From assembly GCA_013416795.1 (NCBI GenBank), contig RQSC01001286.1, positions 8,304-14,607 on the forward strand: a stretch of DNA of 6,304 nt. Direction: 5' to 3'. This DNA is from Prasinococcaceae sp. CCMP 1430. Lineage: Eukaryota > Plantae > Prasinodermophyta. Each line of letters opens with the position of its first letter. The first letter of the stretch is position 1. Below the pieces are notes generated by a model. That model was not told where the DNA came from. It searched no databases and saw only the letters and a program-made list of their open reading frames with translations. A program made the position numbers and the translations under genes. Below are positions 450 to 6,304 of this stretch, in pieces.

Positions 450-1427
450 ATGGAGGCTGGCGGCGCGGAGGCGGAGGCGGGGGCGGAGGTGCCCGAGCTG
501 GTGCCGCAGCAGGAGGAGTGCGCGTGGGAGGGCGCGGAGAGCGGCGACGGCACGCTGCGGTGGCACCTGCGGGAGGCAGCCGATCAGACGGCCAACTTCG
601 ACTTCGATGACGCCGCGCGCCAACTGTGGTTGGCGGTGGCCATGTGCGCGGGCTTCCTGATCCTCGCGGCGGTGCTGCCGCCCATCCCGGCCGCAGGCGC
701 CGAGGAAGCCAAGAAGGAAAAGGAGCGAGAGGCGCCGCCCACGCGCTCCCCAAGGACGACAAAGATCCTCCCTGCGTGGGTGCTGTGGTGGCTGGCGGTG
801 TCCGCAGTCATCTGCCTCTGGGACGCGAGCTATGTGTTGCTGCGCCCATGGAGTGCGTCGCAGCAGCTGTGGGCGCCATATGAGGCGTACGCGCGCGTCG
901 ACAGGCGGTACGGCGTGGATGAATCGGACGCTTTCAACAAGGCGCAGAGCCTCATCAACATAGCCGAGGTCTTTTTGGGGCTCATCGCCGTGGCTCGTGC
1001 GCGCCGAATCGGCCGCGGTGACGCGAGCGCGGTCGCGCTCGCGCTGTTTGCGTGCGCTGCCACGTGCTCCAAGACAGTGTGCTACTTCATCGTGGAGGCG
1101 TGCGGCGGCCTCGAGTACATCAGCCACAACACGCCGCAAACGGCGCTCGCGCTCTTCGTCCTCCCAAGCTCCATCTGGATAGTGGTGCCCGCGCTCGCGT
1201 TCTCCGCCATCACATCCAACATCTCCAAGGAACTAGCGCTGACAGCGACAGACAACGCACCCACTGCGCTGCCAGCTGCCGAGCCAGACGCAAACACCCG
1301 CACTGACTCGAAGAAGACAAAGAAGGCCAGTGCCGGAGAGAGCAAGGCGCGCAAGAAGAAGGAAGCCAGAGCGCGTGCGCCCTCGACAGAGGAGGCCAGT
1401 GCCGTGACCGCGTCAACCGATGCGTGA
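450..1427 (+). CDS. EXPERA (EBP/emopamil-binding protein superfamily) multi-pass membrane protein, 325 aa, single exon
   Basis: Open frame 120..1427. I place the start at ATG 450 (GCGGCATGG) because codons there become GC3-rich and the upstream in-frame part looks like promoter/UTR. Hydrophobic helices carry EBP-like motifs: LWWLAVSAVICLWDASYVLLRP, LWAPYEAYARVDRRYG (cf. EBP LWKEYAKGDSRY), KTVCYFIVE (cf. GDVLYFLTE), FVLPSSIWIVVP (cf. FVFMNALWLVLP). Ends in tandem TGA TGA (1425-1430). Confidence 0.8.
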   Translation: MEAGGAEAEAGAEVPELVPQQEECAWEGAESGDGTLRWHLREAADQTANFDFDDAARQLWLAVAMCAGFLILAAVLPPIPAAGAEEAKKEKEREAPPTRSPRTTKILPAWVLWWLAVSAVICLWDASYVLLRPWSASQQLWAPYEAYARVDRRYGVDESDAFNKAQSLINIAEVFLGLIAVARARRIGRGDASAVALALFACAATCSKTVCYFIVEACGGLEYISHNTPQTALALFVLPSSIWIVVPALAFSAITSNISKELALTATDNAPTALPAAEPDANTRTDSKKTKKASAGESKARKKKEARARAPSTEEASAVTASTDA

Positions 1428-1672: not shown

Positions 1673-3033
1673 TCAGCTCTCGAAGTTAGACTCCACCTTG
1701 ATTGTTAGGTGCTCGCCGTACACCACGCTTGAGTACTCCTCGCCGTGCGCATCCTCGGCCGCAAGCTCAGGCAGCGGCGCTATGACCGCGTCAAAGCTGG
1801 GCTCGTAGAAGAACGGCACAGATATGCGCGAGCGTGCTGAGTCGTCGCTGCCGCCATCCACACTGCCTCCACTGGTGTGAATCACGCGGTGCGGCGTGGC
1901 GATGTATCTCCCATTCGTCCAACGCGTGAGCATGTCGCCAACATTCATGACGAGCAATTGCTCCCCGTCAGCTCCGATCGCCGGGGGTGCGTCGATCCAC
2001 GTGCCATCGCGCGCCTTCACCTGCAGCGACGCCCTCTCCGCGTGGTCCTGGTTTACAAAAGTTAGGCAGCCGTAGTCAGAGTGCTCGCCGCACGATATTG
2101 GCACCGATCGAGGCACCTCCCCCGTCCGCAGCACCTCCCATCCGCCCGCCGCCGCACCGCCGTCGGCGGCGCCCTCGGTGGCCGCGCCCGGAGAGCGCGG
2201 CTCCAGCGGCGGATAGCATATTGCCCGCATCGACCAGAAGGGCTCCTGCAAGGCGTAGTCGAAGGCATCCGCTCGGGCGCCCAGCCCGACGGCGAGGCCG
2301 CGCATGACGTCAGCACCCAGAGCCTCCATCTCTGAAACGTACATTCGCATGGCGGGTTCGAACTCGCTGGGGCTCGCCGGCCATGGGTTCACTCCGCGCG
2401 CCCAGCTCCCAAGGGGAAACGAGCTTGCATCTTGCTCGGCGTACATGTCGAAGGCCTGTCGCCAAGCGCGCGCGCGGCGTGCGAGCTCGCGTCAGCGCCC
2501 TCCACACAGACTGCACCGAAAGCATGCATGCGCACTCACACGCGCGTCCCACGCACCTCGTGGTGGTCTCTCGAGAATGAGCTGGCGTCGCGGTCGTCGG
2601 CACCATCGGCGCCGTAGCGCGTCACGTTCTCACCCAGCCTCTGCCAGCCTCTGTACGCGCCAGCCGCTCCGAGCGCGTGCGCGCGCTTGTAGTCCTCGCC
2701 TTGAGCGAAGAACGTGCGCGCGGCCGAGCGCGCGCCCTCGAGCACCGCTGCGCGCACGCCGTGGCCCGCGAGGTACGCGAAGCCTACGTCACGGCACGCG
2801 GCGTCAAGCGCTCGTGCTGCCGAGCGGAACGCCGCACTGTCCACGGCGGCGCCCTGCCTGCGAAGCCCGCTCACGTCAACCACGGGCAGCGAGCGCAGCG
2901 CCTCCCGCGGCAACGCCGGCGCCGCGGCGGCAACGCCGCGGCAGTCCGCCCCCGCGGGCCGACACAGCGCAGTCCCTGCCGCGAGCGGCGAGGCCAGGCT
3001 CGGGGCGCGCAACAGCGCCCTCCTCGCCGCCAT
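1673..3033 (-). CDS. 2-oxoglutarate/Fe(II)-dependent dioxygenase (DIOX_N + 2OG-FeII_Oxy), At3g50210/DIN11 (2-ODD-C23)-like; exons 3033..2557 and 2455..1673, 419 aa
   Basis: Exon 1 has SLPVVDVS, LDAACRDVGFAYLAGHGV and YRGWQRLGENVT. A phase-0 intron joins ...RDHHE|AFDMY.... Exon 2 has the HxD iron ligands (CGEHSDYG, 2083-2075), the distal His (ATPHRV, 1891-1889), the RxS 2OG-binding motif (RIS, 1828-1820) and a C-terminal VYGEHLTIKVESNF. TGA at 1675-1673. Confidence 0.93.
2456..2556 (-). other. Spliceosomal GT-AG intron (101 nt) of the 2OG dioxygenase
   Basis: Donor GAG|GTGCGT, branch-like GCGCTGAC (CTGAC at 2495-2491), acceptor GACAG|GCC. Removal is phase 0 and restores the conserved D-x-H-E-A-F-D motif. 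Confidence 0.9.
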
Positions 3034-3362
3034 AGTGCGCCGACGGCAGCGCGCGCCGCGCGAGGAGTGGCGTCCCTACACCTCTCCCCAGGCCCCTGCA
3101 CCACACTCGTGTCGCTGCAAGCTTCGCTTTCGGTTTTCTGCCGCAGGCGACAGCGCGCGCTCGGGGGGTCGCGAACAGGCACGGGCGCGTGCGCATATGC
3201 GCGCCTGCACGCCACAGGGGACGACAGCAGCGCGGCGCGGCGCGGCGCGGTGGTGGTGCGTGTGGGGGGCGGCAAGATCCGCGCCGCCGCCATCCCGCAC
3301 GCGCGCGCGCGCGCCCACCGCGCGCGCACGCGCCCGTGCGTGCGCGCGCGCGCTCGTCGGCG
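3034..3362. promoter_or_regulatory. Divergent (probably bidirectional) promoter/5'UTR region between the dioxygenase and ASI1-like genes
   Basis: 329 bp separate the two head-to-head start codons (CAT 3031-3033 and ATG 3363-3365). The region has (GC)n tracts and a short T-rich patch (~3121-3140). Promoter function is inferred from position only. Confidence 0.6.
3297..3350. repeat. (GC)n / alternating purine-pyrimidine tracts with a 13-bp inverted repeat
   Basis: GCACGCGCGCGCGCGCGC at 3297-3314; CGCGCGCGCACGC (3319-3331) is the exact reverse complement of GCGTGCGCGCGCG (3338-3350), with a 6-nt loop. Confidence 0.75.
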
Positions 3363-5424
3363 ATGGTGAAGGTGGTCGAGTATACGCTCGAGGACGAGGT
3401 GCCGCCGGCGCTCAAGGCGCGTCGCTACTTCAGCCGCATCGTCTTGCGGGTCCAGACGAAGGCCGCCGAGGAGGGCAAGCGCTATGAGATCCGGAAGGTC
3501 CAGGTGGGTGACTTCGTGCTGTTACGCACGCGCACGTACCAGGCGGGCGCGGACGACGAAGACAAGGTGCGCCACTTGATGCGCCGGCGTGCGCCTGAGC
3601 GCAGCGCATGCGCGAGCGAGCGACAGAGAGAGAGGGACAAAGCGGGCAGGTACACTGCCGCTCGAGCGCGGTGACGCGCGGGGCGGCGCAGCGCCCCTGA
3701 CTCAGTCGATCGCGCGCGCGCACGCCCCTCTCCATCGTCCCTCTCTCGCAGGCGGACAACCAGGTGGCGCGGGTAGTGTCGATCTTCAAGGTCATGAAAG
3801 ACACGAACAAGCACAAGGAGGGGGAGCAGCTCATGGTGGTGCGCTGGCTGTGGAGGCGTGGGCGTGCCGTGCGCGCGCCACGGGCGCTGCAGGAGGCCAC
3901 ACGCGTGTACGACAACCTCATGAGCGCGCTACCCAAGGGCTGCCAAGAGCTGTACTACGCGTCCAAGTGCGACGAGGCCAACTCTCCCGCCGAGAGCGTG
4001 GTCGCAGTGGAGCTCATCTTGCGAAAGGTCGAGGTGTGCTGCCTGGCGGTTCACAAACGCAATTTCCAGGTGAGCATCAACGACCTGACGAACGTCGAGT
4101 TCTTTTACCGCCTTGCCCTGCGCTGCAACAATCCCGCCGTGTTCCACCCGCTGGACGACATTTACGTCGATGAGACGTGCCCGCTCGCCGTCAAGGTGGT
4201 CAAAAACGTGGACCACTACGCGGTGAAGAAGGGCTTTAATCCGCACTATCTGCCCCCGTCGGTCTTCAACTCGGTCATCGAGAGGTACGTGGCATGACGG
4301 TAGCAATGCCCCTACTGCAGCCACTGAATGCCACGCCTCTGCCGCACGCCAATGCGCACGCCGAGCGCTGACACCACCGGCGGCGACGTTCTTGGTGCGG
4401 GTGTTGTCATAGAACGCACAAGGAAGGCTCTTCTGATAAACTTATGACGGCCTGCAAGGACGCGCAGAACTCGCGCATGGACCCTGCGGCTGCGGCGGCT
4501 AGGAGAGACATGGAAGGAACTGCAGGCGCTGAGGGGTTGAGCCTCGCCAAGTCAGCGGACAATGGTGGCGGCAGCTCCGCACCGCCGCAGAAGAGGGCCC
4601 GAGTATCAGGCGCGCACGAAGAGTCGGCCATCTTCAAGAAGGTGACAGCAGCATCTGTCGCTGATGCCGCAAGGCAACAGAACCACGCGCAGGCGCGTCG
4701 ACCGTCGCTTCAGGCTGCGCAAAGTCAAAAGAAGGCGGCGCGACAGGCTTCGAGGGCGAAGGACAATGCCGCCGATCAGCAGCTTGCTTCTGGCGCGCAA
4801 GGGCACGTGCGCCTGGTGGGTGTGCCCGTTGCGCTCGAGGCTGCCGTGGTGATGCAAGCGCTGCGAGCGCACCTGGTGCGCCACGGCTCATCTGCGCTGG
4901 CGGAGGCCCTTCTGAAAGTGTCTCTCGAGGAGCTGTGGCGCACGTCGACGCTCGGCAGCGCCACCGGCGGCGGCGTGGACGAGCCTTGGGTGAGGGACAT
5001 TGCCACGATGCGCGCCGAGGCACTTTGCTCGCCCGGTCGGCGCAACCTCATCGCACACTTCCGCACGGCTGCGGACGCAGCGGAGGCCATTGCGTTGCTG
5101 TGGGAGCACATGTTGCTTCTGACGCCTCCCGTGAAGGGCGGCGCTGAGGGCTCGCATGCGCCCTCGCCGCTGGTTGCAACGAAACCCGCGCCGCCCCCGC
5201 GGCCACCCATCGGCGAGAGCCCCGACGTGAATCCTGGCTGGATCGTGAATCACGACGGCATGCAGGGCATCGTCGCTGGTCACTTCGCGCAGCGAAACAC
5301 GCTCGAGTTCAGGCAGGCCCTGGAGTGGCGAGCCCTGTCCGTCCAGGCGGAGGGCGAGGTGCAGGCGCTGAGAGAAAGGCAGCAGAAGGAGCTGCGGGGG
5401 CTCATGGAACAGAGGCCCGCATGA
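3363..5424 (+). CDS. ASI1: ANTI-SILENCING 1 (ASI1/IBM2/SG1)-like BAH + RRM protein; exons 3363..3566, 3752..4284, 4413..5424, 582 aa
   Basis: BAH domain: VQVGDFVLLR...VARVVSIF...VVRWLWR...ELYYAS...KVEVCCLAVHKRNFQVSINDLTNVEFFYR. Low-complexity linker with NLS-like PPQKRARV (4582-4605). RRM-like GHVRLVGV (4801) ... RNLIAHFRTAADAAEAIALL (5041). ASI1-type C-terminal motif HFAQRNTLEFRQALEW...RERQQKELRGL (5281-5403). Both introns have canonical signals and keep the frame (3752 is in frame with 3764; phase-2 AG+A, then 4414 is in frame with 4444 with no stops between). Confidence 0.8.
3567..3751 (+). other. Spliceosomal GT-AG intron 1 (185 nt) of the ASI1-like gene
   Basis: Donor AAG|GTGCGC, CTGAC at 3697-3701, CT-rich tract, acceptor CGCAG|GCG; phase 0. 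An alternative in-frame acceptor CCAG|GTG at 3763/3764 would drop 4 aa. Confidence 0.82.
4285..4412 (+). other. Spliceosomal GT-AG intron 2 (128 nt) of the ASI1-like gene
   Basis: Donor GAG|GTACGT, branch-like GCGCTGAC (CTGAC 4368-4372), acceptor CATAG|AACG. Phase 2; it joins the BAH exon in frame to ORF 4444..5424, whose C-terminus independently matches the same protein family. Confidence 0.78.
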
Positions 5425-5631
5425 CGGACGGCAAGGGCCGCCCCCTCCATGCGTGCTGCTCTCTTTCGCGCATGCACACGCATAACTACGACGCACGTGG
5501 TGTGTACTAATGTTTCCGTTGCCACGCTCGAATGCGTTCGCACCGTGGCACCCACCGCGCTGCCATACATCGTGCATGCCTCAAAAAGGCGCGGCAGGCA
5601 TGCGCCGTCGCGTGTTTCTATCTAGGGCACT

Positions 5632-6304
5632 TCAGCTTCCATCGCGTCCCCCCATGATCGCCCTGACCCTGCGCTCGATCTCGTCGCGCAGGCTGGCGCC
5701 CTTCGCCGACTGCGCGTCCGCCTGAGTGAAGGTGCCGCTGGCCTCGTCCTGCAGGCGTAGCTGGCGCGCCTTGCGCGCCGCGACGTCCGCCTCGAGCGAG
5801 GAGGCGGCGTCCGACATCGCCGCCTGCGAGTCGGCCACGGCCTTGGCATCCTCGGCGCTCCCCAGTGCGCTCTCGAGCGCGCTCCTGTCCGACTCGACGC
5901 GCCGCTGCAGCTGTTCCTTGAGGTTCTCGTTCTCGGCTTTCGTGGCGTCCACCTCGAGCTGCAGCTCGCGCACCAGCGCCTTGCGCGTAGCCATCGCCTC
6001 GCTCTCCGCCGCGNCGCCGCGCTCTTGGCCGCGCCGACCGCGGCGTCGCGGGCGCCCGCGAGCGCCCGCACGACTTTGGACGCGGGCACGGTGAGCTCCT
6101 CGCCCGCGTAGAGGGTGGAGCCGCGGCGCTTCTCGAGGAACGGGTTGAGGCGCTTGATTTCGGCGACCGTGGTGTCGAAGCGCTGCGCCAGCACGGAGAG
6201 CGTGTCCCCGGTGTCCACCACCACCGTGGTCGTCACGACGGCGACCGTCGCCGCCGCGGGCGCCGCGGCCGCCTTGGCGAAGATGCGCGCGCGCGCGGGC
6301 GCGC
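5632..6304 (-). CDS. LysM-domain protein with C-terminal coiled coil; 5'-partial, apparent frameshift at ambiguous base N6014
   Basis: The frame is open to the window edge (APARARIFAKAAAAPAAATVAVV...). LysM motif VVVDTGDTLSVLAQRFDTTVAEIKRLNP...LYAGEELTVP (~6227-6084). After N6014 the reading continues in the frame of ORF 5632..5994 with a heptad-rich A/E/L/Q/K/R segment (LVRELQLEVDATKAENENLKEQLQRR). TGA at 5634-5632. Confidence 0.8.
   Translation of the reverse strand, partial: RARARAHLRQGGRGARGGDGRRRDDHGGGGHRGHALRAGAALRHHGRRNQAPQPVPREAPRLHPLRGRGAHRARVQSRAGARGRPRRRGRRGQERGXAAESEAMATRKALVRELQLEVDATKAENENLKEQLQRRVESDRSALESALGSAEDAKAVADSQAAMSDAASSLEADVAARKARQLRLQDEASGTFTQADAQSAKGASLRDEIERRVRAIMGGRDGS

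Follow-up and report, generated by a model that had tools for sequence, protein, structure and literature searches.

The 6304-nt window of Prasinoderma coloniale DNA analyzed here (68% G+C; "the window" always means this whole stretch) carries a genuine, expressed gene of three exons, PRCOL_00006660, with the protein product A0A7R9TEH5. Sequence comparison gives this 582-residue protein an even chance of belonging to the BAH-RRM proteins of the ASI1/IBM2/SG1 family, as a very divergent homologue from the prasinodermophytes, and this is its most likely identity. In flowering plants, ASI1/IBM2 has a key place in linking heterochromatin to the choice of mRNA 3' end, and ASI1 acts on long heterochromatic introns that bear transposable elements (TEs). 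An earlier sequence-only reading of the window had joined three entries of an open reading frame (ORF) list into one protein with an N-terminal BAH domain, a linker, an RRM-like region and a helical C-terminal motif, and had compared it to ASI1.

When 3363-3566, 3752-4284 and 4413-5424 are joined, the reading frame is kept (204 + 533 + 1012 = 1749 nt) and the joined sequence has 582 codons followed by a stop and is free of internal stops. The ORF list breaks the same gene into entries at 3189..3674, 3764..4297 and 4444..5424. The parts of the gene are as follows:

3363..3566, forward strand: exon 1, residues 1-68, opening with the first in-frame ATG; RNA is seen from 3366
3567..3751, forward strand: intron 1, 185 nt, GTGCGC..GCAG, skipped in X1 and X2 contigs and lying inside the BAH-like domain
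3752..4284, forward strand: exon 2, residues 69-245 plus 2 nt, with the BAH-like core followed by the post-BAH extension
4285..4412, forward strand: intron 2, 128 nt, GTACGT..ATAG, skipped in X1 and X2
4413..5424, forward strand: exon 3, residues 246-582, with the stop codon at 5422-5424
5425..5528, forward strand: 3' untranslated region (UTR), minimum extent, from the second X1 contig

To place transcripts on the gene, contigs from four RNA-type runs (X1 to X4) were aligned to window positions 3100-5700. A single 1088-nt contig from run X1 aligned over 3366-3564, 3750-4282 and 4411-4766, thus crossing both junctions and covering all three exons, and its joints, when moved by +2 nt, fall exactly at 3566/3752 and 4284/4413 with GT..AG borders. 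Two additional contigs, one per joint, came from run X2, and a second X1 contig spans the 3' end (4815-5528). Exons 1, 2 and 3 are therefore joined in one X1 transcript and belong to a single gene, as had been proposed. The sequence-only reading had named RNA across 4284/4413 as a check; this junction is present in both X1 and X2, and the single-gene model accordingly stands. A P. singulare-like orthologue provides independent support for the exon joins in the P. coloniale gene, since it has no introns. Its gene is a single uninterrupted ORF of 628 amino acids (P0005) found on three metagenomic DNA contigs, the protein alignment continues over both exon joints, and the start of the P. coloniale protein aligns with that of P0005:

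L003, 718-2604: orthologue ORF, metagenomic DNA contig
L004, 507-2393: orthologue ORF, metagenomic DNA contig
L005, 503-2389: orthologue ORF, metagenomic DNA contig

The presence of two introns in one congener and none in the other is an intron gain or loss. Taken together, the gene model and its expression are, in our judgment, close to certain.

The spliced translation is identical at all 582 residues to P0019 (UniRef100_A0A7R9TEH5 / PRCOL_00006660-RA), which is listed by its sources as a "BAH domain-containing protein" of Prasinoderma coloniale and for which an MMETSP transcript also exists. The gene had been described as hidden, and this does not hold, as public annotation already lists it, under an automatic name of a generic kind; its division into three entries is true of the ORF list but not of that annotation. 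The protein itself is already in databases as uncharacterised, and the ASI1 reading is the only new element. P. coloniale belongs to the Prasinodermophyta within the Viridiplantae. A stramenopile (pelagophyte) source, which the GC content and the Tara match had suggested, was rejected on the strength of the Prasinoderma source names. The earlier description of a compact microalgal-type genome was correct, with 25.3 Mb, 69.8% GC, 6.51% repeats and 7,139 genes, and the prasinodermophyte branch has been placed before the Chlorophyta/Streptophyta split (PMC7455551).

Among 1.84 billion representative proteins, only two species-level members make up the family. A search with exon 3 returned a sole match, P0001, located on Tara Oceans metagenome scaffold L001 and 99% identical to the window. 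Compared with this Tara strain, the coding sequence differs by 8 synonymous changes, by 3 that are non-synonymous and by a single in-frame indel of 3 nt within the linker, a pattern that fits purifying selection. When the exon-2 piece was searched with phmmer against 1.84 billion representative proteins, one true relative was found (P0002, 55% identity), and a second match, P0003, was rejected as spurious, being a bacterial Ig-repeat protein. The MMETSP1315 protein of Prasinoderma singulare falls into the cluster of P0002, together with several variants from Tara and Logan, and likeness within this cluster is 97% or higher throughout. In word-indexed searches, the queries exon 3, whole P0002 and P0002 region 66-325 gave self or same-species matches and no further relatives, and scans of JGI metagenomes with alignments of the BAH part and of the C-terminal part gave no relatives. 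The window protein and its P. singulare orthologue are 39% identical overall and have an identical layout of alternating conserved and variable blocks. Identity between the species is 50% in the BAH-like part (45-195), 61% after it (196-245), 21% in the linker (246-374), 36% in the RRM-like part (375-486), 60% in the C-terminal motif (515-552) and 20% in the terminal helix. The layout described by the sequence-only reading is thus visible as a block-wise conservation pattern, with the BAH and RRM labels being judged separately below. Beyond the BAH-like core, the blocks are:

4133-4282, forward strand: post-BAH extension, residues 196-245, strongly conserved (61%)
4414..4797, forward strand: linker, residues 247-374, low-complexity and rich in Ala, Ser, Lys, Arg and Gln (25% Ala), 21% between species
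4798..5133, forward strand: RRM-like region, residues 375-486, 36% between species, fold not confirmed
5218..5331, forward strand: C-terminal motif, residues 515-552, PDVNPGWIVNH..VAGHFAQRNTLEFRQALEW, 60% between species
5332..5421, forward strand: C-terminal helix, residues 553-582, charged and coiled-coil-like, from AlphaFold2

The N-terminal part very probably forms a BAH domain. The BAH-like domain starts at about residue 45 (KVQVGDFVLL, nt 3495) and its core extends to about residue 195 (nt 4132), with QVARVV, VVRWLWRR, ELYYASK and CLAVHKRN..FFYR carried by exon 2. Core motifs of BAH domains are GDxVLxR, [YQ]VARV, RW.[YW]R, ELF/YxS and KCxV, and the algal sequence reads GDFVLLR, QVARVV, VRWLWRR, ELYYASK and KVEVCCL, in what we take to be the BAH-domain order. 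BAH was the sole Pfam family found in the whole protein (residues 45-167 against profile positions 2-93, E 0.072), and with residues 40-250 as query it aligned at 45-170 against profile 2-96 with an E of 0.007 and 16.7 bits, a sub-threshold score given the 30.8-bit gathering cut-off. Pfam found nothing on the three separate exon pieces because intron 1 splits the domain. About 30 residues separate the WLWRR strand from ELYYAS, an unusually long loop that would explain the poor profile score. In the Atlas, where language-model features were searched against 7.7 million clusters, exon 2 shared 193 features with BAH clusters at a similarity of 0.93, and its ten best named matches were all BAH. 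The Pfam match, the Atlas match and the source name all agree with the BAH label given by the sequence-only reading. In rice OsASI1, the aromatic cage of the BAH domain is formed by Tyr55, Trp75 and Phe77 (PMC9910501). W100 and W102 of the algal protein (the W-x-W in VVRWLWRR) are invariant in both species and spaced as in the W-x-F of OsASI1. At residue 80, located 20 residues ahead of W100, P. coloniale has Phe and the P. singulare-like orthologues have Trp.

An RRM-type fold in residues 375-486 is slightly favored by the sequence comparisons, and if this region is an RRM, it is a degenerate one. It contains HVRLVGVP, which resembles a β1/RNP2 start, and has RRNLIAHF at the RNP1 position, so that a possible topology can be read from the sequence as β1 (HVRLVGVP), helix, β2, long loop, β3 (RRNLIAHF), helix and β4 (MLLLTP). 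Most of the best 100 Atlas matches of exon 3 were RRM-clan clusters (RRM_1, RRM_11, PARP14-type), with similarities of only 0.65-0.72 that the tool itself rates as a lead. The earlier claim of an RRM-like region thus retains the Atlas hint, but not detection by Pfam or by PDB sequence search, the latter giving no match for this region.

Within the C-terminal motif, NPG, NH, VAGHFA, RNTLE and LEW are invariant in both species, and no match was found in Pfam families, the PDB or metagenomes. The sequence-only reading had aligned this motif with a presumed plant counterpart, H.SQPNTIEYDMAMEW; the motif HCSQPNTIEYDMAMEW did not occur in paper texts or in the PDB. On the condition that this motif is real, its ungapped alignment to residues 536-551 scores 51, which none of 5000 shuffles reached, and its alignment to the P. 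singulare-like orthologue scores 34, reached by 14 of 5000. The C-terminal helix was the only segment modelled with confidence, with mean pLDDT per 10-residue block of up to 82-92 in both AlphaFold2 runs. These runs used the whole orthologue with a 4-row alignment and residues 365-582 of the window protein with a 5-row alignment, and the family offers only two effective sequences for structure prediction. Outside the terminal helix, the models are all-helix at low confidence and were regarded as meaningless.

Whether the protein descends from the same BAH-RRM ancestor as plant ASI1 is evenly poised on the sequence evidence. The references for ASI1 were Arabidopsis At5g11470 (Q9LYE3), rice OsASI1/TN1 (Q5ZE12), and 7XPJ and 7XPK, which are structures of the OsASI1 BAH domain (PMC9910501). 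When the whole P. singulare orthologue was searched, the best Atlas cluster was a Streptophyta "putative Protein ANTI-SILENCING 1-like" cluster at 0.80 with 152 shared features, a value that is a lead only, as one third of shuffled proteins reach it as first match. This cluster has a representative of 673 amino acids and 1556 members, with BAH in 95% and RRM_1 in 14% of them. The next clusters were BAH-only at 0.72 and other BAH architectures at 0.69 or lower. A second line of evidence comes from the end of the BAH domain. The plant BAH-tail pattern given in the sequence-only reading, searched with X at its dots, matched only 7XPK/7XPJ in the PDB (22.5 bits, E 3e-4), at the rice segment CISKDERNRQPSPRELAMADYIFYR, and was therefore accurate. 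This rice segment, 25 residues chosen post hoc, found its best local alignment in P. coloniale at 165-188 (score 38, reached by 17 of 5000 query and 5 of 2000 target shuffles) and in P0005 at 192-215 (score 47, reached by 1 of 5000 query and 0 of 2000 target shuffles). In the two algal proteins, both sites correspond to its own place in the BAH domain, with shuffle p values of ~0.003 and 0.0002.

Several observations weigh against this kinship, as do the shuffle behavior of the Atlas score, the post hoc choice of the rice segment and the sub-threshold Pfam score given above. The exon-2 BAH piece matched no plant protein by phmmer among the 1.84e9 representatives, and with the algal BAH, two family profiles, the tail or the conserved-tail pattern as query, OsASI1-BAH was not retrieved from the PDB at E<=10. 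The tail alone had clathrin as its best PDB match (15 bits, chance level); other PDB matches (thioredoxin, methyltransferase, MSP domain, FBXL5) were also at chance level and were rejected. The similarity of the tail may be generic to BAH domains, its ..FYR end being, we assume, common to BAH domains generally. By alignment on the Y-VARV motif of BAH readers, the equivalent of Tyr55 is presumably Gln72 in both species. The P. singulare proteins have no Pfam BAH match. In the RRM-like region, the RNP1 and RNP2 positions lack the usual aromatic residues, and no RRM-clan Pfam family was found at E<=10 in either the whole protein or the isolated region. Mean pLDDT from AlphaFold2 was 42.5 (whole orthologue) and 39.6 (residues 365-582), which makes the models unusable. 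The statement that the match to ASI1 goes beyond generic domains was thus not borne out, given the phmmer result and the failed retrieval of OsASI1-BAH, and the expected reciprocal best match to plant ASI1 was likewise missing from the reverse PDB searches with the algal BAH. What stands of the proposed ASI1-like identity is the Atlas cluster, the tail alignment and the layout; significant sequence similarity to plant ASI1 was not found by phmmer of the exon-2 piece or by the PDB searches.

The resemblance to the ASI1/IBM2/SG1 family lies in the order of parts, namely an N-terminal BAH domain, a long linker, an RRM or RRM-like region and a short C-terminal tail. Rice TN1/OsASI1 has its BAH domain at 28-145 and its RRM at 340-416 of 502 amino acids (PMC10106862), and sizes are comparable at 502 (rice TN1) and 673 (Atlas representative) versus 582 and 628 for the algal proteins. 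Both groups belong to the green lineage, the tail pattern C..K..RN.Q.S...L...[DE][YF].FYR is partly common to them, and the RRM of ASI1 is itself weak, given the 14% of cluster members with Pfam RRM_1. Unlike ASI1, the algal protein shows no sequence similarity at database level, its BAH domain has the long loop of ~30 residues described above, the first position of the aromatic cage is apparently occupied by Gln rather than Tyr, and the RRM-like region is without RNP aromatic residues. Long TE-bearing heterochromatic introns are also not evident, with 6.5% repeats in the genome (PMC7455551) and introns of 128 and 185 nt in this gene. The plant BAH-PHD readers EBS and SHL share the BAH core motifs, and EBS-like clusters lie among the structural neighbors of the exon-2 Atlas match; the algal protein differs in having no PHD finger, a far greater length and another C-terminal half. 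For the RRM-like region, the quasi-RRMs of hnRNP F/H (RRM_11) offer a parallel, as VRLVGVP resembles their VRLRGLP signature and canonical RNP aromatics are absent there too. Clusters of RRM_11, hnRNP H2 and RBM12 are among the exon-3 Atlas matches, but at only 0.65-0.67, with no Pfam match and with a long putative β2-β3 loop (~35 residues).

That the 582-residue product is an artefact of joining, and that a BAH-only protein and a 326-residue C-terminal protein come from separate genes or transcripts, is very improbable. An ATG at 4444 does open a 326-aa ORF, and one metatranscriptome contig (X3, 4170-4593) is unspliced across intron 2, whose retention would bring a frame stop at 4295-4297 and a predicted BAH-only product of ~249 residues. 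However, the X3 contig has the Tara-strain variants 4396 C and 4443 G and could stem from DNA, from pre-mRNA or from a genuine minor isoform, while a single X1 contig has both introns removed, X2 confirms each joint, and the orthologue is one uninterrupted 628-aa ORF on DNA contigs. These contigs and the orthologue refute two genes as the main form. Membership in another BAH family (EBS/SHL BAH-PHD, AIPP3/BDT BAH-TFIIS, ORC1, CMT/MET1 methyltransferases or BAHCC1/BAHD1) is improbable, though less so than two genes. The BAH domain is generic, and ASH1L-like, EBS-like, Agenet-BAH and DNMT1-RFD-BAH clusters are among the Atlas neighbors of exon 2. For whole proteins, though, such clusters reach 0.59-0.69 as compared to 0.80 for the ASI1-like cluster, and a Pfam scan of P0019, P0002, P0004 and P0005 at E<=10 found no PHD, TFIIS, AAA+, Agenet, chromo, methyltransferase, Tudor or SANT domain in either orthologue. 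These families are unlikely because no accessory domain is present.

The main rival, a substantial possibility still short of even, is that the gene encodes a Prasinoderma-specific BAH protein whose C-terminal half is a lineage-specific interaction module and not an RRM, its likeness to ASI1 being convergent or unrelated. The two-member family among 1.84e9 representatives, with none in JGI metagenomes, is what this explanation would lead one to expect, and it agrees with the lack of any RRM match in Pfam or the PDB, the exon-3 Atlas values of only 0.65-0.72, the failure of every reverse search to retrieve ASI1 and the low-confidence, helix-only AlphaFold2 models of the C-terminal region. Only generic BAH features, a comparable length and the disordered linker would then be common to this protein and ASI1. 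This explanation fits less well with the ASI1-like cluster standing above all BAH-only clusters for the orthologue, with the dominance of the RRM clan in the exon-3 Atlas list, or with the order VRLVGVP..(helix)..NLIAHF..(helix)..LLL, which, as read from the sequence, fits an RRM topology. The OsASI1 tail also aligns at the homologous site (p 0.003 and 0.0002), and no shuffle of 5000 reached the score of the C-terminal motif, an argument that counts only if the presumed plant motif is real.

The protein is best explained as a fast-evolving, probably nuclear chromatin adaptor made of four parts: a BAH domain plus the conserved segment that follows it, a basic linker that is disordered, the RRM-like region, and the C-terminal motif with its helix. 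A basic patch in the linker, PPQKRAR (KRAR at residue 306, nt 4591-4602), suggests a nuclear-localisation signal by its resemblance to one and may direct nuclear import. The BAH domain, with two of the three cage aromatics apparently in place, would dock on a histone tail or on a peptide of a chromatin enzyme. Such docking is modelled on rice, where the OsASI1 BAH domain binds Arg297 of SUVH6 (PMC9910501). For the C-terminal half, with its RRM-like module, its VAGHFA.RNTLE.R..LEW motif and its terminal helix, the ligand would be nascent RNA, a partner protein or both. ASI1 binds AIPP1, and partner binding by the C-terminal half is proposed by analogy to this pair. Together, the two halves would link the state of chromatin to the elongation of transcripts or to the processing of their 3' ends. 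By the same analogy, a function like that of ASI1 in chromatin-coupled RNA processing is proposed tentatively and is held with less confidence than the kinship itself.

ASI1 has been described as plant-specific (PMC7472560), and no paper on ASI1 in algae was found. If the kinship is true, the origin of the family moves to the base of the Viridiplantae, because the Prasinoderma lineage branched before Chlorophyta and Streptophyta. A broader proposal, less likely than not, is that an ASI1-type BAH-RRM factor dates to the common ancestor of all green plants and survives in the Prasinodermophyta, in a repeat-poor genome and with a gene that holds two short introns or none, that its ancestral job was a general one rather than read-through of long introns, and that the land-plant role is a later co-option. 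That ancestral job might have been the coupling of a chromatin mark or a histone methyltransferase to the handling of nascent RNA. Since the usual ASI1 substrate is not evident (6.5% repeats, introns of 128-185 nt), the ancestral role was probably more general, provided that the kinship is real. P. coloniale would in that case offer a minimal system (25 Mb, few repeats, short introns) for the role of BAH-RRM proteins before TE-rich introns. A prasinodermophyte homologue would, if true, be a modest but real extension of the age of the family, and the sequence evidence for it is suggestive, not conclusive. If the kinship fails, what is left is a BAH domain too divergent for curated profiles to catch, a clean example that is of local interest only.

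The genes that surround the BAH gene in the window are:

450-1427, forward strand: upstream ORF, 325 amino acids from ATG 450, with several hydrophobic stretches and a Lys-rich tail
1673-3033, reverse strand: 2-oxoglutarate/Fe(II) dioxygenase gene, with DIOX_N in ORF 2536-3033 and 2OG-FeII_Oxy in ORF 1673-2446
5632-6304, reverse strand: LysM gene, convergent, with an N-terminal LysM domain at 6020-6236 (E 1.5e-9) and a coiled-coil tail at 5635-5994

The upstream ORF has no Pfam family at E<=0.01 and is probably an uncharacterised membrane protein. In the dioxygenase gene, a candidate 101-nt GT..AG intron (2456-2556), seen in the DNA alone, keeps the frame and would give a protein of 419 residues. 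This gene is transcribed divergently, and its start lies 329 nt from the ATG of the BAH gene, a distance at which the two probably share a bidirectional promoter region. Metatranscriptome contigs from run X4 touch the GC-rich promoter with its GCGC repeats (3233-3352) by pieces of only 18-19 nt, which change strands, have long loose ends and look like chance low-complexity matches, not transcripts. The downstream neighbors of the orthologue (TTL, ACBP, GxGYxYP) are unlike those of the window, and there is no synteny on that side. The frame of the LysM gene is apparently broken near an N at 6013, and this is probably an assembly flaw, since Tara scaffold L001 reads differently there. Transcript contigs of the two convergent genes have ~19 nt in common, those of the BAH gene reaching 5528 and those of the LysM gene starting at 5510, indicating that the two 3' UTRs meet or overlap.

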